64,000 nt of DNA from positions 285,661 to 349,660 of IMG/VR virus record IMGVR_UViG_3300045996_002337; one strand, given 5' to 3'. Of this stretch, positions 1,058 through 45,043 are shown in pieces (within the stretch, counting starts at the first letter, position 1; the number at the start of each line of letters is the position of its first letter). Below the pieces are notes generated by a model. That model did not search any database and was not told the origin of the DNA. It saw only the letters and a list, made by a program, of their open reading frames with translations. The position numbers and the translations under genes are program-made.

Positions 1058-1519
1058 GTGGCAAAAAAACGCATCCCAAGCTTGGTGGTTGAACGAGCTG
1101 AAGACCAGGGCAATTACTTCTATTTGAGCGTGCTCGAATATCGGCGCGAGAATTATCTCGTCATCATCGATAACATTACAGAAGATGGCATCGGGGCCTA
1201 CGTACTTGATTACGCGCAGCAAGAAGGTCTTGATCTTCGCCAACTTATGAGCGTCGTGACCGAGTGGTTCTATCGCGGCTCATATCGTTACCCGCTCTCA
1301 TTTGAGTTTTCACGTCGTGGCATGGCGCACATGACGAACAGGATTCACAAGAATTTTGAACTTGCGCACGTCACCCGATTGATCGGAAACGACTTTAGGT
1401 TTGACCTCACAGCCCCACCTAAAGTTCGTCGTCGTCGCGTTTCAATGATCCCGGCTGGAGTTGAGATCAAGCTCAGAAAATCAAGCGAGCGCGTAGAGGT
1501 TCTGAAGTTTCCGAAGTAG
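1058..1519 (+). CDS. Hypothetical protein (only plus-strand gene)
   Basis: 153 aa, protein-like composition, occupies otherwise empty sequence, has its own promoter and AAGGA SD. Confidence 0.75.
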   Translation: MAKKRIPSLVVERAEDQGNYFYLSVLEYRRENYLVIIDNITEDGIGAYVLDYAQQEGLDLRQLMSVVTEWFYRGSYRYPLSFEFSRRGMAHMTNRIHKNFELAHVTRLIGNDFRFDLTAPPKVRRRRVSMIPAGVEIKLRKSSERVEVLKFPK

Positions 1520-2503
1520 CCATTCTTCAGCGGCCGCCTCCAGTTCGGGGGTCCGCTTTTGCAGGGTGGTCTCCTTGAGCTTGCGCTGGACAGTGTCGTC
1601 CAGTTCACGTAGGTGGGCTTCGATCACCGGCATGTCAACAAGGCCCTTCTTCACAGAAAGAAGGTACTCGGCATTGCTGCGCGGGAATGTGATCGCTCCA
1701 GTGTCCAATAGCTCGATGGCCTGCTCATAAACGCGGATGGCGTGGGACATCGACTTGTAATCCACCGCTTTTTCAGCAGCTCCAGTCGTGCGTTCGCCAT
1801 ACCCTGCGATAAGCTTCTTCACAGCGGTGTTCAGCGTCTGCAGAGAAGAGGTCTCCAAGTAGCTACGTCCATTCAACTCAAGCGTACGAAGCACCCGGTT
1901 GTTGTTCGGCGTTTCAGAGGTGAGCAGCTCGGCTTCGCGTGCGATCACATCGATCACCTTTTCACCATCGATCAAGTCATCGAGCCGATACTCAGCTTTC
2001 TTTTCCTGCAAGGAAAGCTTAAGCTCTACAGCAGAGATAGCAGCGAGGACCTTGCGAGCTGCATTCAGACGCTCACCGCGTCGAACGTAGTCAAACGTCT
2101 GCTTCATCGCAAACCCGACCATCGAATAGACTTCGGCGTTCGTGAACTTTGCGATCAGTTCCTGAAGAAGCTCTTGCATCTCAGGAGGGGTGCTGGTATT
2201 CTTCACCCCGCCGAAGGCGATTTCAAGTGCGTAAGTTTGCCCTGCCACGAAGTCGCGAACGAACGTTTGAAGTGGGAAGTACTCCGTCTCGACACCATTA
2301 TCAGGCATCGATTTATCGACTGCAACAGGTTCACCGTCAGCGTCAACCCGCGTCTTGAAGATGCGAGGAGCTTTGCCTAGCAGCAAACTGTCGAGTGAGG
2401 GGAGGTACACGACCTTGTTGTCGGTATCAGAAGTAGGCGTTGAGGTACCGTACAGCTTCGAGCCATATGTCACCTCAAAAAGATTCGTGGTTTGATCTGT
2501 CAA
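1481..2503 (-). CDS. Pol-beta superfamily nucleotidyltransferase (RlaP/Nuc-transf-like) with C-terminal helical domain
   Basis: YGSKLYGTSTPTSDTD = GS-x-x-YG...SDxD motif; C-terminal YKSMSHAIRV...ELLDTG; TTG start after AGGAG. Confidence 0.8.
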   Translation of the reverse strand: MTDQTTNLFEVTYGSKLYGTSTPTSDTDNKVVYLPSLDSLLLGKAPRIFKTRVDADGEPVAVDKSMPDNGVETEYFPLQTFVRDFVAGQTYALEIAFGGVKNTSTPPEMQELLQELIAKFTNAEVYSMVGFAMKQTFDYVRRGERLNAARKVLAAISAVELKLSLQEKKAEYRLDDLIDGEKVIDVIAREAELLTSETPNNNRVLRTLELNGRSYLETSSLQTLNTAVKKLIAGYGERTTGAAEKAVDYKSMSHAIRVYEQAIELLDTGAITFPRSNAEYLLSVKKGLVDMPVIEAHLRELDDTVQRKLKETTLQKRTPELEAAAEEWLLRKLQNLYALA

Positions 2504-3711: not shown

Positions 3712-4284
3712 TTACACTCTACCTTGCTCGATCAAGTGTAACTGAAGCCAGACGACGTACGAGTAGGCCAAGGCGTGTGACTTCTTGAAGGAGTAACCGG
3801 ACTCATCCTTCGCGTACAGAATCCTTCGTGCAGCTTCGCGGTCCTTCTTGTAGAGGCCGATGAAGTTCTTCTTGCCAGGTCGAATGAGGGCCATGATGTC
3901 AGCAACCTCCATGATCGACGTTGGCTTCAGATCGCAGAGAAGATCGCCATGCTTGGCCAGCTGAAAAATCTTGTCATGGTTAGACGGAACGAGCAGCAGC
4001 TTCCAATCGGGTTCTTTCTTCAGCAGCTCGTCAATCTCGGCTCTGCTTGTAAAGTGCTTGTACACAGTGAGGTGGAGAAAGTCAACCTTCAGGTAGCCCA
4101 GGTCCTCTGCCTCTTCATATGGGATTGCCGCTAGGCCGGTCACCGGGTCCTTTGCAATTTTTTGTGGATACACTCCACATGGATGTGGAGTCAGCTTGCC
4201 GTCTTTCAGCAAACTGGCCCGCACCCACGTTTTAAAGAGGGTGGTTGGCTTGAAATCGGGGGTGATGTCAATATCGACGTCCAA
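3712..4284 (-). CDS. dnaE: Split minimal DNA polymerase III alpha (DnaE), C-terminal catalytic fragment
   Basis: DVDID (D401/D403 equivalent), HPCGVY, KVDFLHL (D555 equivalent), LIRPG, GYSFKKSHALAY; TTG start. Confidence 0.85.
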   Translation of the reverse strand: MDVDIDITPDFKPTTLFKTWVRASLLKDGKLTPHPCGVYPQKIAKDPVTGLAAIPYEEAEDLGYLKVDFLHLTVYKHFTSRAEIDELLKKEPDWKLLLVPSNHDKIFQLAKHGDLLCDLKPTSIMEVADIMALIRPGKKNFIGLYKKDREAARRILYAKDESGYSFKKSHALAYSYVVWLQLHLIEQGRV

Positions 4285-4285
4285 A

Positions 4286-4501
4286 TTAAATGTCCCTCAT
4301 GTTGTCAAGCTTAATCATCATTACGATCTGTGGTACCGCTTCTCGCCATCTTAACATGATCAGTGGGTCATCAGACTCACAAATCAGGATGTCAAAATAT
4401 CCACGACGGACAGCATGGAGGTTCAGTAGCGCAGTATTGAACACACGTGAATAGAAAGCCTTTGAATGCCCATCCATGCCCTCGAAGATCTTTCGAGTCA
4501 T
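4286..4501 (-). CDS. Small hypothetical protein
   Basis: ATGA overlap with upstream gene; fills the gap before the dnaE fragment. Confidence 0.5.
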   Translation of the reverse strand: MTRKIFEGMDGHSKAFYSRVFNTALLNLHAVRRGYFDILICESDDPLIMLRWREAVPQIVMMIKLDNMRDI

Positions 4502-5262
4502 AGACCCAATTCCTTCGTCGCCTTGCAAAAATCGGTAAACATGTCGCGTGTCTTTTCAGACTGGTTGATCCGCGAGATCATTGCACCAACCTGAACGGCA
4601 TCTTCAAGCCGCAGCGAATCATCAGGAGTTTGGTTCTTAAGCCACTCTCTAAACGCTGTTGATGCTACTAGAAACCACGCAGAGAGCTTTCTTCGTTGCA
4701 CCAGGTCGAGCACCTTGTTCACACCAACCGCCGTAAAAACATCACGCAACGGGACCTCATGACTTTGTGAGAGCTCAGTCACCAAATCAATGCTATCAAT
4801 GAACTGCTTCGTCGGTGGAACAACCTTGTCATACCCCTGCAGGTACAGGGCGTACACGTTGTCGCGACACCACAATGATGGCTGCACGTTACCATTGTCC
4901 ACCATTGCCTTAACGAAAGCCATTGGCGTCGGCATGTTCACGCGAAGAACGTGGTTAGCAAACTTGATGAACGTAGAAAAATACGACGAGGCGCTAAACG
5001 TTTCGATTGGTGGGACTGACCTTCTGTTGAGGCGCATCCACTCGCTGTAATAGGCGTAAGCGGCTTGACCAATTGGGCTTCGTAGCTCGTCAAGCTTCTC
5101 ACGTTCACGACAACGGTGATTCATGAACGTACGCTCACTCACGAAGTCATGATTGCAAAACGTGCAGCCCCACTTCACCTTACGTTGCAGCGGAGCTTCG
5201 GCCTCAACGGTTTGGTTTCTTCTTGCTGCTGCTTGGTTTCTCAGTGCTTCCCGATCCATCAC
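4498..5262 (-). CDS. Zinc-finger-containing hypothetical protein
   Basis: WGCTFCNHDFVSERTFMNHRC (CxxC...HxC) followed by a helical domain. Confidence 0.7.
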   Translation of the reverse strand: MMDREALRNQAAARRNQTVEAEAPLQRKVKWGCTFCNHDFVSERTFMNHRCREREKLDELRSPIGQAAYAYYSEWMRLNRRSVPPIETFSASSYFSTFIKFANHVLRVNMPTPMAFVKAMVDNGNVQPSLWCRDNVYALYLQGYDKVVPPTKQFIDSIDLVTELSQSHEVPLRDVFTAVGVNKVLDLVQRRKLSAWFLVASTAFREWLKNQTPDDSLRLEDAVQVGAMISRINQSEKTRDMFTDFCKATKELGL

Positions 5263-5707
5263 CCACCTCTTTCTTGAGTTTCGTCAGTTCCTCTTTCTCC
5301 CACCCAAGTTCCTCCGCCATCTGCATGATCGTTTCACCATCGATGTTAATCGCATAGAGGGTAGCTTCACGCGTGGACACGTCGTAATACTGCTTGATGG
5401 CTTCTAACCGCAGCTTGGTCGCGCTCTTGGCACCAGGGGCCTTCAGCCATTGATACCTACGACTCTTGCCCGTGGCCGCCGCGGCCAACAGCTTAAACAG
5501 CAGTGCCTTCTCTTGTCCCAGAGAAAACCCATAGGGGTTAACAAACGTATTTAGCCGAATCAGCTGGGCGTGATCAGAAGTTCCAGTCATCCACCTCGCG
5601 ATTACGAATGGTGAAGCTGCCTTCTTGTCCTCAGGGCTGAGGCGATCATACCACGTCATGTCCCGCCCGGAGATCTTTTCCAATCCGTCGAATAGATCAA
5701 ACGCCAC
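5204..5707 (-). CDS. Clamp loader small subunit (T4 gp62-like)
   Basis: SPFVIARWMTG...NTF...LFKLL...RYQWLK pattern; next to gp44 homolog; GTG start after GGAG. Confidence 0.65.
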   Translation of the reverse strand: MAFDLFDGLEKISGRDMTWYDRLSPEDKKAASPFVIARWMTGTSDHAQLIRLNTFVNPYGFSLGQEKALLFKLLAAAATGKSRRYQWLKAPGAKSATKLRLEAIKQYYDVSTREATLYAINIDGETIMQMAEELGWEKEELTKLKKEVGDGSGSTEKPSSSKKKPNR

Positions 5708-5821
5708 GTGTAATTCTCCAACCTGTAGTCCAAAGATCAACGCGAAAGAACCACTTGCCATCATGCTTTCCGAGACCAACCCGTATCATGCGGTTATTTT
5801 TATCAAGTGGTAGCTTTGTAA

Positions 5822-6049
5822 TCATGCGAGCTCAACGATGTACGTAGTTGGTGATGTTTCAGTAATTTTAGCACGAACCTTCCACCCCGCGAAGCTGATG
5901 TAAGGACCCTCGGTTGCAGTGAAGTGAATCTTCAAATCTTCAGTTGCCTCAACAGCGCCATCAATGACGTGCTCCATGAGCGCGCTCTGAATTCCAGCAG
6001 GGAGCTGAGTGAAGAAGCAGGTGCCAATTGGCCATGTATCGGTAATCAT
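5822..6049 (-). CDS. Small hypothetical protein
   Basis: Likely start MITDTWP after AGGA; annotated longer ORF 5822..6169. Confidence 0.45.
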   Translation of the reverse strand: MITDTWPIGTCFFTQLPAGIQSALMEHVIDGAVEATEDLKIHFTATEGPYISFAGWKVRAKITETSPTTYIVELA

Positions 6050-6193
6050 AGTTGTTTTTCCTGTAGTTTTAGGCACCGCTGACAGCGACGCCGCGTAAAC
6101 CAAAAAGAGCGTCTTCGCTTCTGAAAAGGATTCGACCATGGCGTCCACAAGTGAAAGCCGAGGCGACACCTCCAGTTCATGTCATCGTCTCAA

Positions 6194-7108
6194 TCACAGA
6201 AGCGCAGCAATCTCAATGAAGAGTGCGGCGATCTGCAGTTCAGGATCTGACACGAATGAGTGTTGATACTGATACTGTGCAATGAGGACGACGGCTTCAT
6301 CTTGCGCCTTCAGCTTCTTGCAGCGGTGAAGATTGTCGTAGAGAAAGCGATAGACCTCCAACAGCTCTTCCTTCGTGGCGGTTTCACACACGAGTTTACG
6401 GCACGCGCGGATGTCTCCAGCTTCAAGTAGGGGTAGGAGCTGGAGCTTCCAGTCGTGTGCGGCCCCACCACCGTCGATCTGCAGTTTGCCACCAATAGAA
6501 CCGCTCTCAAGGAGCTGGATGATCTTGCGGAAGTCTGGATAACCGGCGGCGACAACCTTCTCGAGGTCTTCAACTTCAAACGTGATGTCCTCAGCAACAA
6601 GGATGTCGGCAGCCTTGAGCAGCACGTCATCTTTTGACGGAGCCGCGAACACGAACTCTTGAAACCGTGAACGAAGCGCCGGTGTGATCTTGTTGATGTA
6701 ATTACACGTCGCGATGTAGCGGCAGGATGTTGAAGTAGATTCAATGAGGTCACGGAGCAGGGCTTGTGCGTCATGACCAAGGTAATCAAACTCCTCTAGG
6801 CGGACCACCTTGAACTTACCAATCGCCATGGTCATGGCGAAGTTCTTCACCTTGTCCCGCATTGCATCAATTTTTTCGTCTGAGCAGTTGACCTTCAGGA
6901 CATCACTTCGATCGACACCGAGGGACCTGATCAACGCCAGTGACATGGAACTTTTGCCAGTCCCTGGGCCCCCCTGCAGAAGCAGGTTTGGAATTTGGCC
7001 TTCTGACACATAGCTGTCAAATTTCTGACGGTCACGTTCATTAGTAACGATGACATCACTGACCTCTTTAGGCCGATATTTTTCACACCAAAGTTTTTTC
7101 ACAGTCAT
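6194..7108 (-). CDS. Clamp loader AAA+ subunit (T4 gp44/RFC small subunit family)
   Basis: LWCEKYRP, PNLLLQGGPGTGKS, KVVRLEEFDYL, ALRSRF (SRC motif). Confidence 0.92.
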   Translation of the reverse strand: MTVKKLWCEKYRPKEVSDVIVTNERDRQKFDSYVSEGQIPNLLLQGGPGTGKSSMSLALIRSLGVDRSDVLKVNCSDEKIDAMRDKVKNFAMTMAIGKFKVVRLEEFDYLGHDAQALLRDLIESTSTSCRYIATCNYINKITPALRSRFQEFVFAAPSKDDVLLKAADILVAEDITFEVEDLEKVVAAGYPDFRKIIQLLESGSIGGKLQIDGGGAAHDWKLQLLPLLEAGDIRACRKLVCETATKEELLEVYRFLYDNLHRCKKLKAQDEAVVLIAQYQYQHSFVSDPELQIAALFIEIAALL

Positions 7109-7173
7109 GGTTCCAGATAAAACAAGGCACGACACCTTCTATGGTGTCATTTTAACATGTAAGACGCGAGGTC

Positions 7174-8388
7174 TTACTTCTTTTCAGGGGTCGTAATTGA
7201 CGAGGCTCGCTTGAACCCCGTTGTGGTGCGCGCGTCAACCACAGTGTTCGGATCAGGCTTAATAAGACCTAATGAAGATTTCGTGATCTGCTCCCGAACC
7301 GGTGGGGCATCAACGCTCACCACGCTTGTTAAGCCAGTCTGTGGCGCTGGCTCTTCGGCCGGCGTAGGAAGGTCAACGTTATCCATTACCTGAACGTCTT
7401 CACGTTTTACCTCTGGCACTTCCGAGACCTCTAGAAACTCGTCCTCGGGTTCTGGCTGAGGAGGTTCTTCCTTTGATGACTCGACAGGAAAAACCACAGG
7501 TGGAAGAGAGTCCCCTTCTTTCACAGAAGGATAGAGACGTTCGAAAATTGGAGGCTGCGGGTCTTCATTCAGCTTTCGCTGTTGCTCCGCATGAAAGGCT
7601 TCTTCCTCTGGATCTGGAACGTAGTGCTGCGGGCCCAAAGGCTCCTCGACCACGCTGTGCTTCACGGGATCGTAGGCAGCCAGCTTCTCCTGAAGAGGGG
7701 TTTCCTTTTGAGACTTGCGATGGGCCCAGAGGAAGTTGCCAGCGATGATCAGGAAGATGGCCAACGGGTCGAACACGAAGATGATCATGAGGATCACCCA
7801 CTTCACTGCCTGCTCTACTGGCACGTCAAAGGCCTTCGCAACGTAGAGAATCGGGCCGGCTTTTGCTTCAGTGCCAATCTGGGTGATCTGCAAAGCGGGC
7901 AATTCCCGATCAATGGTCGCGAGTTGTTCAGTGACCGCCTTTTGCTCACCTTCAAACTGCTTCATCAGGGTGATTCGCGAACGAGAGTAGTTTGAAGGCA
8001 GCTTTGCGATCTGATCGTCAATCTGTTTCTTACGTTCAAGCAGTCGTGTTTGCTGTTCCTTCAACACGCTCACCTTCAGCTCACCTTCCTTCGTTCCAAG
8101 GATCGCCTTCTGAAACTCACCGGACAAATATCCGGCGGCGCCCGCAGAAGTAATCGTCATTGTCACCGCCGCGGCTACAAGAGCATACGACTTCATCAGC
8201 TTTGAAAGGTCCTTCCAGTAAGTGTATAGGAGGGACACAACCACGATCTTGCCAACGTCTAGTGCGATAGCGAGTGCGATGATGATTGGATTGGCACCGA
8301 AAAGTGCCGAGATGCCAATGACAGAAACGAGAGAACCGAGCCCTTCGATAAAGAGGGCTGCGGCAAAGGTGAGAATGATGAAGAACAT
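7174..8388 (-). CDS. Membrane protein with coiled coil and acidic/Pro-rich C-terminal tail
   Basis: 3 N-terminal TM helices, coiled coil, IIFVFDPLAIFLIIA helix. Confidence 0.75.
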   Translation of the reverse strand: MFFIILTFAAALFIEGLGSLVSVIGISALFGANPIIIALAIALDVGKIVVVSLLYTYWKDLSKLMKSYALVAAAVTMTITSAGAAGYLSGEFQKAILGTKEGELKVSVLKEQQTRLLERKKQIDDQIAKLPSNYSRSRITLMKQFEGEQKAVTEQLATIDRELPALQITQIGTEAKAGPILYVAKAFDVPVEQAVKWVILMIIFVFDPLAIFLIIAGNFLWAHRKSQKETPLQEKLAAYDPVKHSVVEEPLGPQHYVPDPEEEAFHAEQQRKLNEDPQPPIFERLYPSVKEGDSLPPVVFPVESSKEEPPQPEPEDEFLEVSEVPEVKREDVQVMDNVDLPTPAEEPAPQTGLTSVVSVDAPPVREQITKSSLGLIKPDPNTVVDARTTTGFKRASSITTPEKK

Positions 8389-8406
8389 TAGGGGTCTTTG
8401 TAAACT

Positions 8407-8967
8407 TTAGACGACGTGGGCGCCGAACTGCAGGGTGACAAAGGAACACTTCTCAATCATTTCAGCAGTCAACACGGTCGTGATACGACGGGGTTTCAAT
8501 GTTTCTAGATCGAAGATCGTACTAACGACTTGATCACCAATTGAGTAGTTTTCCAACACTTCACGGTGCGGCATCTCGAGCCGATACGGAAAAATTGTGA
8601 CGGTCGAAAAGCTGTTATATCCCATGTCAAGCACCTCTTTCAGCGCTTGCATATTTGGTTCACCGCGCTCAATTGATTCCAAAACTGAAAGCGAAATTTT
8701 CAAGCGCAGGTTCGCTGTTAATGTTGTCACCTGCTCCTCGAAAGGAATTTCAAAGTCGATTGGGAGAGCCTCAGCCGGAATAAAATTTGGTGGGTTTGAG
8801 AATGCCGAATCGTCTTCACTCTTGATAATCTTACTTCCACGAACAGTCTCGGCGGGCCCTCGCATCTGCTCACCAATTTGAATTTTTGGGTTGCACAGCT
8901 GAAGCCCACGGATGGATAGATCCATGAGGGCCTTATCCGTGTACTTGATAAGATTGGATTTTGACAT
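8407..8967 (-). CDS. Hypothetical protein
   Basis: Likely start MSKSNLIK immediately after the groES stop. Confidence 0.6.
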   Translation of the reverse strand: MSKSNLIKYTDKALMDLSIRGLQLCNPKIQIGEQMRGPAETVRGSKIIKSEDDSAFSNPPNFIPAEALPIDFEIPFEEQVTTLTANLRLKISLSVLESIERGEPNMQALKEVLDMGYNSFSTVTIFPYRLEMPHREVLENYSIGDQVVSTIFDLETLKPRRITTVLTAEMIEKCSFVTLQFGAHVV

Positions 8968-8968
8968 T

Positions 8969-9292
8969 TTAGAAGCTTGTCTTGTACGTTTCGGTGACGT
9001 CGTCCGTGACAAGCACAATCTTCGAGTCGTCGGTTTTCCACATCTTCTCACCGTCAACTTCGGTGCCAAAGGACCACATGAGGGCCTCGATCAGAATGTA
9101 TTCACCGACGGCGACTTGGGCGTCAGGTCCGACTGCGACGACCTTACCCCAACGTGGGAGCTTCTGGCTTGAATCAAGGGTGGGCAAGATGATGCCACCT
9201 TCGGTCTTGCGGTCAGTAAACTTTCCCTTGGACCCTGCGGTCTCATCGAGAAATTTGAACATGACGTTGTTCTTGAGGGGAAGGATGTTCAT
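8969..9292 (-). CDS. groES: GroES-like co-chaperonin
   Basis: ILPLKNNV...TEGGIILP...GKVVAVGPDA..VAVGEYIL. Confidence 0.88.
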   Translation of the reverse strand: MNILPLKNNVMFKFLDETAGSKGKFTDRKTEGGIILPTLDSSQKLPRWGKVVAVGPDAQVAVGEYILIEALMWSFGTEVDGEKMWKTDDSKIVLVTDDVTETYKTSF

Positions 9293-9315
9293 ATGAGTAT
9301 GGTTATGTTAACGGA

Positions 9316-9546
9316 TTATTTCCGCTTGAGTTGCTTGGCTTGACCAGACGTGTTCGCAGCCTCGACTGAGACCGCAAGAAAATCAACATCTGCGACGACG
9401 TCAGATTTAACGCCGTCTTTTACGTCGATTGCATGCTTCCGCTGCTCGACTGCCTTTGGAATTGGTGCTGAGGCAAGTTGCTGCTTGATTGCAAGCAGTT
9501 CAAAATCGATCAGTTCACCGCGTGCGCTGCGAATGAGTTGTCCCAT
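9316..9546 (-). CDS. Hypothetical protein
   Basis: 76 aa; GGAGA SD; late promoter upstream. Confidence 0.7.
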   Translation of the reverse strand: MGQLIRSARGELIDFELLAIKQQLASAPIPKAVEQRKHAIDVKDGVKSDVVADVDFLAVSVEAANTSGQAKQLKRK

Positions 9547-9597
9547 TGTATCGTTCTCCGGAGATTTTTAGGCGTGCGTCTATATATTGCACTTCTA

Positions 9598-9605
9598 TAT
9601 TTATA
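9598..9605 (-). promoter_or_regulatory. Late promoter TATAAATA
   Basis: Exact T4 gp55 consensus in intergenic gap. Confidence 0.75.
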
Positions 9606-9619
9606 GGCACCCGCGCAGC

Positions 9620-10171
9620 TTATTCGTGGAAAAATTCTTCAGCAGATACGTTCATCTTAACACAATCGACAACATGCAGCCCGATGATAAACAGGAGGTA
9701 ACATGCACAGGATGAACCTCGACCAACACCCCAGACGACATCATTTGCCCTGAGCTGATCCAGAATGTAAATGATGGTTCTCATGAACTCCACCATCCCG
9801 CGTTGGTTGACCTGATCCAGCTCAAAGGCGATGCGATCGATTGCTTCTTCAACCTGCTCGGGCGTGTAATCCGTGGGGCAGCGTTCCTCGAACTGTGAAG
9901 CGATGTATTCTTCAAGATCGAGAGTTTGATACTTTTCGGGCAGTTCCCACCCCATGTCGAGCGCAATTGGTTCCTGCCCGCCGACTTGAATTTGATCCTC
10001 GGCCGGCACCTGCGCATTGAAGGTTACGACATCGGGAGTTTCTTGAAGGACTCGAAGCTTTGAGGGAGGGACGCCCAAAAGCAGAAACCGGCCCAACTGG
10101 TCCGGTTCCACTTCAGAAACTCCGTCGAAACGGAGTTTTCGGTTCGTCAGTTCAGATTGAAGTGAACGCAT
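9620..10171 (-). CDS. dnaE: Split minimal DnaE, N-terminal fragment (pre-catalytic palm helices and GS motif)
   Basis: RIAFELDQVNQRGMVEF...WGVGRGSSCACYLLFIIGLHVVD...EEFF matches DnaE RLxxEL...GPGRGSxAGSLVAY...FERFL. Confidence 0.85.
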   Translation of the reverse strand: MRSLQSELTNRKLRFDGVSEVEPDQLGRFLLLGVPPSKLRVLQETPDVVTFNAQVPAEDQIQVGGQEPIALDMGWELPEKYQTLDLEEYIASQFEERCPTDYTPEQVEEAIDRIAFELDQVNQRGMVEFMRTIIYILDQLRANDVVWGVGRGSSCACYLLFIIGLHVVDCVKMNVSAEEFFHE

Positions 10172-10810: not shown

Positions 10811-11368
10811 TCACCTTTGATCGTCACGCCTTCCAAAGTCGGGAAACGCTTCGGGCTGGACAGGTCCAAAAACGGGAGGCACCTCGACCTCACCGTGAGA
10901 ACCGTCCTGGACCAGTTGATGACACTTAACCCCACGCTTTTCGAGCCGCTCAACACCTTCAGGTAGACGGTAGTGCTTGCGGTACACTACACGGGAAATC
11001 TTGGCCTGCACGATCAGTTTCGCACATTCTGGGCAGGGAGAATAGGTGGTGTAGAGTGTCGCCCCGCGAGAGCTCACCCCACCATTGGCTGCAAGTTTGA
11101 GAATTGCGTTGGCCTCAGCGTGGAGAACTTCCTGCTTGGTTCGAACATTGCCATCTTCGTCATACATCTCGCATACATCGTCTTCACCTTCTGCACCCGC
11201 AGGCATGCCATTGTAGCCATCCGAGATGATCTGACCATCCTTCACGATGAGGGCCCCCACCTGGGCACGGGTGGCTTTGGAGCGCTTTGACCAAACCTCA
11301 GCCATTTGCATGTAGGCCTCATCGAGCTCGATGCGATTTGTGTTAACTTTGAGAATTGGTTTGTTCAT
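10811..11368 (-). CDS. dCMP deaminase
   Basis: QVGALIVKD..IISDGYNGMP, LHAEANAI, TYSPCPECAKLI. Confidence 0.93.
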   Translation of the reverse strand: MNKPILKVNTNRIELDEAYMQMAEVWSKRSKATRAQVGALIVKDGQIISDGYNGMPAGAEGEDDVCEMYDEDGNVRTKQEVLHAEANAILKLAANGGVSSRGATLYTTYSPCPECAKLIVQAKISRVVYRKHYRLPEGVERLEKRGVKCHQLVQDGSHGEVEVPPVFGPVQPEAFPDFGRRDDQR

Positions 11369-11411: not shown

Positions 11412-12641
11412 TCAGGTCGTTTTTGGCTTCTGATACACACGAACCCAATCAACCTTCAGGGCCTGAGGAAAGACTGAATCATCAATCCCATGGCGACCTG
11501 CCCATTGTCCGCCCAAAGCAAGGTTCAAGATGATGTGGGCGGGCGCGCCAAGTGTACCATCAGAGTACTTCCAAGGTGATTTTCGGACGTAGATTGCTGT
11601 GCCATCTACGTAGACCTTTGCGTTGTCCCAGTCCCACTCTAGACCTACGGTATGCCACCCTTCAGTGAACTTGTAGTCTGCCGGCCAATAGGTCCACTGC
11701 TTGTTGAACTTTGGATGGGCCCAGTAGAATGGAGCTGGATGTTTAGCGGTTCCAACCACGCCCGAATGAAGCATGTGCGGCCGATCCTCTACTCCGTTAT
11801 TGACGAACTCGAAGATGTCGATTTCTGGAGGCCAGCTCAACTTGCCTTTATCCGAAACATCTGAGTTGAGCCAGAACGCCGCTGAGCATCCAACGCCAGG
11901 TGGCATCCAAACTCGGGCTTCGTAGTAGCCCCAGTAGAAGGTTGCATCTGAGCGAATTAACCCAGATTCATAGTTGACGCCATCGGGGTGATCGTTACGA
12001 ACCTTGTGAGCTGTTAGCTCGAGGGCCCCATCTTTAACGATGTGGTTATTGTTGTCACGGTAGCGCTGCACCTCGTCGTTGAGGTAATCACCGGTCCCAG
12101 CAGAATAAATCGTGCGAGTGTGCCACTTGCTTCGATCAAGCTCAGTTCCATTAAACTCATCGTTAAACACGAGTTCGTACCCTGCAGGCACGAATGAACC
12201 TTCAGTGCTGGTGATTGGTTGCGTGAGAGAAATTGCTTCACATTCCATGAGAGAAATGGAATCAACATGGCAGCGGCTGCCATTTGCGATAACTGCGACA
12301 ACGCCTTTGGTAAAGATCGGCGCGATGAAGCGAACTTCATAGTCCTTCCACTCAGTGCCCGTCATCTTCACTTCGTAGCTGCGGAATGTTTCATCGGCGG
12401 CTGTTTTGAATCTCACCATTCCAGTAGCAAAGCCAGTGGTGGCAGTCATTTTTGCGCGAATCTTCAGAACATATGACGCACGTGCCTTGAGCAGGCCATG
12501 ATTAAAAAGCTGCTTGGCGAGATAGCCAATGTTGAGCGCCTTACCACCTGGTCGCTCCGTGCTAGAAATTACAGTTGCGGTGCTTAACGTCCAGTTTGCA
12601 GCAACGTTTTCAAAAGTTCCGTCCTTGACCATTTCAACCAT
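11412..12641 (-). CDS. Glycoside hydrolase family 16 with N-terminal carbohydrate-binding (CBM4/9-like) domain
   Basis: LVFNDEFNG..LD..KW, WPPEIDIFE catalytic ExDxxE, FTEGWHTVGLEW, LNLALGG, VDWVRVYQ. Confidence 0.88.
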   Translation of the reverse strand: MVEMVKDGTFENVAANWTLSTATVISSTERPGGKALNIGYLAKQLFNHGLLKARASYVLKIRAKMTATTGFATGMVRFKTAADETFRSYEVKMTGTEWKDYEVRFIAPIFTKGVVAVIANGSRCHVDSISLMECEAISLTQPITSTEGSFVPAGYELVFNDEFNGTELDRSKWHTRTIYSAGTGDYLNDEVQRYRDNNNHIVKDGALELTAHKVRNDHPDGVNYESGLIRSDATFYWGYYEARVWMPPGVGCSAAFWLNSDVSDKGKLSWPPEIDIFEFVNNGVEDRPHMLHSGVVGTAKHPAPFYWAHPKFNKQWTYWPADYKFTEGWHTVGLEWDWDNAKVYVDGTAIYVRKSPWKYSDGTLGAPAHIILNLALGGQWAGRHGIDDSVFPQALKVDWVRVYQKPKTT

Positions 12642-45035: not shown

Positions 45036-45043
45036 TATTTATA
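45036..45043 (-). promoter_or_regulatory. Late promoter TATAAATA upstream of gp32
   Basis: Exact T4 late consensus. Confidence 0.65.

Follow-up and report, generated by a model that had tools for sequence, protein, structure and literature searches.

Two genes bracketing the clamp-loader genes of a T4-like jumbo phage encode the halves of a minimal Pol III alpha-type polymerase core that probably assembles without an intein

The window considered here is a stretch of 64,000 nucleotides, bases 285,661-349,660 of the 349,660-bp IMG/VR virus record IMGVR_UViG_3300045996_002337 (97% complete by estimate), which comes from an uncultured, T4-like jumbo phage. At issue are two small genes on its (-) strand, 5,336 bp apart: one at 9620..10171 for a protein of 183 amino acids (aa), the N-piece, which consists of the N-terminal half of the palm of the DNA polymerase III (Pol III) alpha subunit and an extension, and one at 3712..4284 for a protein of 190 aa, the C-piece, which carries the DxDxD strand, further palm strands, the KxD and RPGK motifs, and a helix-loop-helix of the fingers. 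Both pieces are homologous only to Pol III alpha, and together they are the halves of a minimal C-family polymerase core. A sequence-only reading of this DNA had arrived at such a two-subunit enzyme, a mini-Pol III, and had implied that it was new. It is not: Iyer, Anantharaman, Krishnan, Burroughs, and Aravind describe, for group 2.2 jumbo phages, a previously unrecognised, phage-specific, minimal Pol III alpha that is split and stands beside a family B polymerase (PolB) (Iyer et al. 2021, Viruses 13:63, PMC7824862), and the present finding is therefore a correct rediscovery.

The longest open reading frame (ORF) of the N-piece reaches 10261, and the ATG start that gives 183 aa is backed by 120 homologues of 181-188 aa at ~100% coverage. 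Its C-terminus, ...AEEFFHE and then the stop codon, lies in the helix equivalent to FERFL of Pol III alpha, just where it had been placed from the letters alone. The C-piece starts with TTG, with an in-frame TGA 15 nt upstream and the Shine-Dalgarno sequence GAGGGA 8 nt upstream; 81 of 120 close homologues are exactly 190 aa long, and 87 of them begin MD[IV]D[IV]D. This start and these N-termini bear out the claim that the C-piece begins at the catalytic DxDxD, its first catalytic Asp following one residue after the start (Met-Asp-Val-Asp). For the remote phage relative Atu_ph07 (MF403008.1, ~58.3-58.9 kb; L016:1432-2007), the public record gives the C-piece a coding sequence, AUZ94883, that begins 27 codons after the likely start MKNIPDIDIDF and so leaves out the catalytic DxD strand, apparently through an error of annotation.

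Residues 119-212 of the longest N-piece ORF match positions 2-95 of PF07733 (E 2e-8) with 34.6 bits, above the curated cut-off of 23.9, and with 39 bits in the genome scan; the N-piece further matches PHROG 11127 (E 6e-33), and the C-piece PHROG 11778 (E 7e-59), with a weak match also to the Pol III finger model PF17657. Profile searches of the PDB with both families matched only Pol III alpha chains (E ~1e-4 to 4e-5); profiles are needed for this, single-sequence searches with either piece being marginal (E ~0.4-0.7). The top Foldseek matches of both pieces are likewise all Pol III alpha, DnaE1, or PolC. In the PDB profile search, the DxD strand region is covered by C-piece residues 2-30 and Taq 608-716 by 57-152, and D2, D4, and D68 align with Taq D463, D465, and D618. 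In the AlphaFold2 models the N-piece has a pLDDT of 89.7 and the C-piece one of 85.3; residues 1-7 of the latter, the DxD strand, are disordered when it is modelled alone. N-piece residues 81-183 fit E. coli alpha 281-394 with a VIA-align Z of 11.2 (best unrelated fold 3.8), and C-piece residues 71-190 fit 560-782 with a Z of 9.5 (best unrelated fold 2.6). In E. coli numbering, residues 75-183 of the N-piece are the palm half 280-394, and the C-piece corresponds to 401-430 plus ~511-782. N-piece residues 1-75 form a family-specific, small alpha/beta extension, no convincing fold or feature match having been found for residues 1-78. It is the Pol-beta-like nucleotidyltransferase palm that is cut, between the FERFL helix, which comes after the GS motif, and the strand with the two metal-binding Asp.

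Together the two pieces amount to 373 aa of palm and shortened fingers. The C-piece alignment skips the thumb (E. coli 433-510) and the greater part of the index finger, from Arg-Pro-Gly to the Tyr754 loop, which have therefore been deleted, and the split polymerase has no PHP, thumb, clamp-binding, (HhH)2, or OB domain. The sequence-only reading was thus right to list the thumb, clamp-binding, OB, and PHP domains as missing, whereas part of the fingers, which it took to be largely lost, survives as far as about E. coli residue 782. Nor do the absent parts lie elsewhere in the 349,660-bp record, in which genome scans found no intact dnaE, no PHP (PF02811), no HHH_6 (PF14579), and no further Pol III fragment. 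With the full-length phage DnaE model PHROG 405, the scan of the whole genome matched only the N- and C-piece genes, at model positions 336-428, 577-685, and 774-807, leaving 1-335, 429-576, and everything beyond 807 unmatched. As had been claimed, there are no intein termini: the Pfam scan gave no match to an intein or Hint family, neither piece shows splice-junction residues, and there is no room for intein halves because the C-terminus of the N-piece is in the FERFL helix and a single residue precedes the first catalytic Asp of the C-piece. Since the thumb, PHP, clamp-binding, and OB domains are absent, the enzyme would be distributive and without proofreading by itself. The C-terminal QLHLIE of the C-piece was considered as a clamp-binding motif and dropped; it aligns with, and is modelled as, a conserved fingers helix.

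The roles of the active-site residues are taken from cryo-electron microscopy and dnaE genetics on their E. coli equivalents, F756 included. In E. coli, R362-G363-S364 bind the sugar and phosphates of the deoxynucleoside triphosphate (dNTP), R362A being dead; D401, D403, and D555 bind the metals; K553 touches the primer-terminal phosphate, K553A being dead as well; R639-P640 touch the templating nucleotide; Y754 stacks against the incoming base; and H760 is the steric gate against ribonucleoside triphosphates (rNTPs) (bioRxiv 10.64898/2026.06.29.735100; PMC8485763). The phage counterparts are R151-G152-S153 in the N-piece and, in the C-piece, D2/D4/D68, K66 for K553, R135-P136 for R639-P640, Y164 for Y754, F166 for F756, and H170 for H760. 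They stand in recognisable motifs of the C-piece, namely the D2/D4/D6 strand, K66-x-D68, R135-P136-G137-K138, and the helix-loop-helix Y164-S-F166-K-K-S-H170. In alignments that reach to isolates as remote as 22-36% identity, the invariant residues are R113, E117, G148, G150, R151, G152, S153, and E179 of the N-piece, with the nucleotide-binding motif GxGRGS at G148-S153, and D2, D4, D6, K66, D68, R135, P136, K138, H170, and Y174 of the C-piece, Y164 being shared by at least 90% of close homologues. When the family is clustered at 50% identity, DxDx[DE] occurs in 101 and KxD in 102 of the 103 full-length representatives. All three catalytic Asp are thus present and invariant, as the sequence-only reading had it, and so is the replacement that it had noticed in FERFL: the mapped catalytic and substrate-contacting residues are all conserved except Arg390, at whose position the profile alignments put the invariant Glu179.

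These residues speak for a templated polymerase that selects dNTPs and handles the triphosphate differently, and against a primase-like enzyme; templated dNTP polymerisation is favoured because the equivalents of the H760 gate, of Tyr754, of the template-contacting Arg-Pro, and of the primer-contacting Lys553 are all kept. A nucleotidyltransferase of other chemistry, be it a template-independent tailing enzyme or a primase-like enzyme that works de novo or with rNTPs, the function that had been floated earlier, is unlikely. It would suit the Pol-beta-like fold, which is common to many non-templated nucleotidyltransferases, as well as the change of Arg390 to Glu, the missing dNTP-contacting basic index-finger residues, and the lack of a duplex-holding thumb; against it, however, stand the invariant steric-gate His (H170) and the conserved counterparts of R639-P640, Y754, and K553, and the genome already encodes a gp61-like primase.

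That the two halves find one another is suggested by structure prediction. With alignments made for this analysis, the N-piece and C-piece were predicted as a complex with an ipSAE of 0.89 in three runs, a value that 58 of 80 solved complexes and two of 110 mismatched pairs attain, whereas the best of three controls scored 0.00; the runs share at least 97% of their contacts, and the pLDDT of the partners is 91. The tightest predicted contacts join N-piece residues 145-150, the GS-motif strand, to C-piece residues 3-8, the DxD strand; further contacts are predicted between N-piece 165-180 and the C-piece helix 167-180 and between the N-piece extension (residues 6-38 and 71-77) and C-piece 39-55. 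Strand V145-G150 of the N-piece would thereby pair with strand D2-T8 of the C-piece across a very large interface and rebuild the catalytic sheet, while the extension would clasp the C-piece hairpin 39-55. The resulting composite site would take R151-G152-S153 from the N-piece and D2/D4/D68, K66, R135-P136, Y164/F166, and H170 from the C-piece, and would add dNTPs to a primer on a DNA template. On the strength of this prediction and of natural single-chain fusions, the two halves probably bind non-covalently, with no intein involved.

Among GenBank phages, tblastn matched 97 records with the C-piece and 96 with the N-piece, and host genus by host genus the counts agree; the similar fragments in related jumbo phages that the sequence-only reading mentions do exist. 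Orthologues occur in 121Q, PBECO4, RaK2, GAP32, CBB, XacN1, RsoM2USA, PA5oct, and Atu_ph07, at no more than 50% identity to the C-piece and 36% to the N-piece of the window for the closest isolate; in these GenBank records the halves are always separate genes, 4 kb to ~220 kb apart. In seven environmental orthologue pairs with 34-77% protein identity, the nonsynonymous divergence (dN) is 0.17-0.69 and the synonymous divergence (dS) is saturated; dN/dS is 0.04-0.18 where it can be computed, which mostly it cannot, given the saturation. On these selection figures the two genes are not remnants. That the ORFs might be inactive leftovers of a broken dnaE, or that each might work alone in an unrelated role, is highly improbable, even with a reduction as extreme as 373 aa in total and a separation of up to ~220 kb in some phages: the lengths are fixed at ~183 and ~190 aa in hundreds of clusters, the catalytic residues are invariant, the proteins keep their identity while dS is saturated, the two pieces strictly co-occur in isolate genomes, and independent fusions exist. 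The decay that would have undone the two-subunit proposal thus finds support neither in these figures nor, with no intact dnaE in the record, in the genome.

The fused forms came from an exhaustive profile search with 595 matches. Cluster P0342 is a protein of 375 aa, N then C, joined by a linker of ~10 residues across which the PF07733 match runs unbroken; P0391 and P0392, clusters from other samples, are N-to-C fusions of 375-376 aa that are 78-81% identical to it. P0380 (336 aa) has the N-core followed by C, and P0381 (398 aa) is circularly permuted, C followed by the N-core. The fusions P0342, P0380, and P0381 were verified by hhalign (E 7e-25, 2e-12, and 3e-11) and on contigs, the single-chain loci lying on short metagenomic contigs (L101:1516-4181, L100:871-3383, L099, and L102). 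The gene of P0380 overlaps the stop codon of a gene for a 552-aa protein with a ColE2-type AEP initiator-primase domain (PF03090) plus a helix-turn-helix, and that of P0381 overlaps the start of an AAA_25 helicase-type ATPase gene; judged by these domains, both neighbourhoods are replication contexts. A polymerase that extends primers is a better companion for an initiator primase than a second primase would be, a further point against the primase-like alternative. In a quick, unrooted maximum-likelihood tree the 375-aa fusions form a clade with 100% support, nested (SH-aLRT 96) among C-only proteins of ~206-218 aa, with P0380 and P0381 elsewhere on long branches; the topology of this tree, whose resolution is low, suggests that fusion took place at least three times, probably secondarily. 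Scans of genome contigs and of viral contigs found no close relatives of the fused forms, and the neighbours of two fused-form relatives (L103 and L104) are not N-pieces. In one IMG/VR relative of the window (L060:8068-10558) the N-piece gene lies between the Zn-finger gene and the C-piece gene, ~760 bp upstream of the latter and still a separate ORF; the arrangement could be an intermediate towards the fused forms. A wider idea, rather doubtful, is that mini-Pol III is a portable, free-standing primer-extension module of ~340-400 aa that tolerates splitting, re-fusion, and circular permutation, that would be paired with an AEP primase or a helicase in small plasmid- or phage-like elements, and that in jumbo phages would carry out the first synthesis on primers before PolB takes over.

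The rest of the replication gene set places the pair beside a conventional replicase. The sequence-only reading had left the presence of a B-family replicase and of a primase to be checked, and both were found: the genome encodes a complete PolB of 909 aa, with both exonuclease and polymerase domains, together with the gp61-like primase, a gp41-like helicase, a gp32-like single-stranded DNA-binding protein (SSB), and homologues of UvsX and UvsW. No match to a family A polymerase (PolA) was found in the genome, and the Pfam models PF02916 and PF09116 detected no gp45-type sliding clamp there; a clamp for the clamp loader described below must be very divergent, host-derived, or missing. Because the genome has this PolB with its exonuclease domain, a primase, and a helicase, mini-Pol III is not the only polymerase of the phage and an accessory role is plausible; because it lacks a thumb, a clamp-binding domain, and a site for a proofreading partner, a processive replicase is unlikely. 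The earlier suggestion of a non-covalent, two-subunit enzyme other than the replicase is in this way supported by the complex score, by the fusions, and by PolB. Two stand-alone DnaQ/epsilon-like 3'-5' exonuclease genes also lie in the record (G000:C1:13331-13876 and 107160-107672, record coordinates, both on the (-) strand), although mini-Pol III has no PHP domain of the kind that binds epsilon in bacteria and PolB has an exonuclease domain of its own.

Several genes, all on the (-) strand, lie between the two pieces. A clamp-loader ATPase like gp44 and the small subunit of RFC is encoded at 6194..7135 (PHROG 168, E 5.6e-74; Pfam AAA and Gp44_lid), and a probable gp62-like clamp-loader small subunit at 5204..5779 (PHROG 225, E 5e-7, a weak match; PHROG 11758, E 9e-17); the location of gp44 and gp62 genes between the pieces, ~5.3 kb apart, had been read correctly, if with a weak match for gp62. 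Next to these are a C2H2-type Zn-finger protein of 254 aa at 4498..5262 (PHROG 11058, function unknown), an ORF of 80 aa at 4286..4528 that is conserved only in close relatives and whose stop comes 1 nt before the C-piece start, a membrane protein of 404 aa at 7174..8388 that is conserved in the clade of XacN1- and RsoM2USA-like phages, and a GroES/gp31-like co-chaperonin at 8969..9292 (Pfam Cpn10, E 3e-7; PHROG 931 and 3188). The outer flanks carry genes for an RlaP-like nucleotidyltransferase of the Pol-beta family at 1481..2503 (PHROG 388, RNA-repair type), a dCMP deaminase at 10811..11368, and a 409-aa glycoside hydrolase family 16 protein at 11412..12641, again all (-).

The arrangement is shared. 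At the DNA level, megablast with the region turned up no close relative among GenBank phages; by protein similarity the nearest isolates are Ralstonia phage RsoM2USA, Xanthomonas phages XacN1 and Xoo-sp13, and Stenotrophomonas phages, and remoter ones are the Rak2/121Q-like coliphages, PA5oct, and Atu_ph07. In 80 IMG/VR relatives, as far as the contigs reach, the order on one strand is N-piece, small ORF, GroES-like gene, membrane protein, gp44-like gene, gp62-like gene, Zn-finger gene, (small ORF), and C-piece, and RsoM2USA has the same order of N-piece, clamp loader, and C-piece. The position of the gp44-like gene is held in 121Q, XacN1, RsoM2USA, and most of the 80 loci, at which the gp62-like gene always follows it and the Zn-finger gene always comes after the gp62-like gene, usually directly before the C-piece. 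In XacN1 the C-piece has moved 12 kb away; in 121Q, PA5oct, and Atu_ph07 the N-piece stays with the GroES and clamp-loader genes, and the C-piece with the homologue of the Zn-finger gene, not far from the genes for primase and helicase. It may be conjectured that the co-directional bracket of N- and C-piece goes back to the ancient insertion of a block of genes into a once continuous gene. For the Zn-finger protein, Pfam, PHROG, and Atlas give only a phage-specific family with an N-terminal C2H2 finger; either the polymerase or the clamp loader may have it as a third partner. An exact TATAAATA, the T4 late-promoter consensus, occurs at window positions 9598..9605 (-), 15 nt after the N-piece stop and ahead of the small ORF and the GroES-like gene, and again at 45036..45043 (-), ~70 nt upstream of the gp32-like SSB gene. 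The observed number of copies is two, against 0.37 expected, and five of 100 shuffles reach two, so this is weak evidence; a real late promoter at 9598..9605 would put the N-piece in one transcription unit and the genes that follow it in another.

Whether these linkages make mini-Pol III an essential polymerase of the replisome, one that shares the fork with PolB as, for example, a lagging- or leading-strand enzyme on a sliding clamp, is a fair question, the answer to which is probably no. The split enzyme and PolB are kept together in essentially all group 2.2 jumbo phages; the linkage to the clamp-loader genes is conserved, and in 121Q and PA5oct the C-piece is a few genes away from those for primase and helicase. 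Yet neither a clamp-binding domain nor a recognisable motif for it was found in the pieces, Pfam detects no gp45-type clamp in the genome, every element of processivity and proofreading of replicative Pol III is absent, and the gene linkage may be mere co-regulation.

The reading preferred here, to which a probability of about 0.72 may be given, is that the pair makes up, half by half, a minimal C-family (Pol III alpha-type) core which assembles without an intein and is accessory to a family B replicase. Beside that replicase it would serve in short primer extension after priming, in gap filling, or in repair, perhaps helped by the products of neighbouring genes. Several points weigh against it. 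An invariant Glu179 stands where Arg390 would be expected, and in E. coli R390A lowers catalytic efficiency 27-fold (bioRxiv 10.64898/2026.06.29.735100; PMC8485763); the index-finger segment that bears R709, R710, K714, and K715 is deleted, and triphosphate binding must therefore differ from that in E. coli. The thumb, which would hold primer-template DNA, is missing. The complex score may partly recall intact Pol III alpha, and so reflect likeness and not binding. The specific role, whether primer extension, repair, or another, is argued from gene context and analogy alone, and full-text literature searches found no biochemical or genetic data on any member of the family.

If the pair is active, it would be the smallest known C-family DNA polymerase, with a natural active site built from two polypeptides and no splicing, and would help to define what Pol III catalysis minimally requires; it might offer a scaffold for split enzymes or two-piece polymerases, and T4-like jumbo phages would have a two-polymerase replication system. 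The split enzyme also touches on ideas about how bacterial replicases arose (PMC7824862). In the main the present analysis rediscovers a published, computationally defined system, to which it adds details of the conserved module, of the natural fusions in both orders, and of the predicted interface. Not met in the passages of PMC7824862 that deal with it are the clamp-loader bracket, the fused and permuted forms with their neighbours, the change of Arg390 to Glu, the clasp-like extension, and a complex prediction with controls.

Comparison with known systems begins with those of the phages themselves. The genome paper on CBB noted a truncated Pol III alpha, and many GenBank records label one or both pieces as DNA polymerase (III alpha). 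The split Pol III of group 2.2 is described as two proteins from distant genes, an N-terminal one that binds NTP and a C-terminal one that binds Mg and template, and synthesis of one strand or repair has been put forward as its function (PMC7824862); it is made up of the same two proteins (PHROGs 11127 and 11778), with no other Pol III domains and with PolB present. This phage belongs with that group, being T4-like, with two stand-alone N and C proteins, PolB, an RFC-like loader, and proteins of the gp32, gp41, and gp61 types. Against the description of distant genes, however, the two genes here, in RsoM2USA, and in most close environmental relatives lie 4-6 kb apart in the same direction, on either side of the clamp-loader block. 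With bacterial DnaE and PolC the pair has in common the palm fold, the GS motif, the Asp triad, Lys553, Arg-Pro-Gly, and the helix-loop-helix with Tyr754/Phe756/His760, but those enzymes have at least 1,160 aa in one chain, against 373 aa in two chains here, and, unlike them, the pair has no PHP domain, thumb, little finger, or beta-binding, OB, or tau-binding domain, lacks most of the index finger, and has Glu for Arg390. Cyanobacterial split DnaE is likewise a C-family polymerase from two genes, but it is of full length and made covalent by split-intein halves, whereas the phage pieces start and end inside the polymerase core and have no Hint domains; Synechocystis DnaE is split near residue 775, as against ~395-400 (E. 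coli numbering) in the phage. Finally, replisomes of two polymerases in which the second extends primers are familiar from Bacillus, with DnaE beside PolC, and from eukaryotic Pol alpha. There too a reduced, non-proofreading polymerase works beside a proofreading replicase, and mini-Pol III beside PolB may be comparable, though the likeness is one of functional analogy only.

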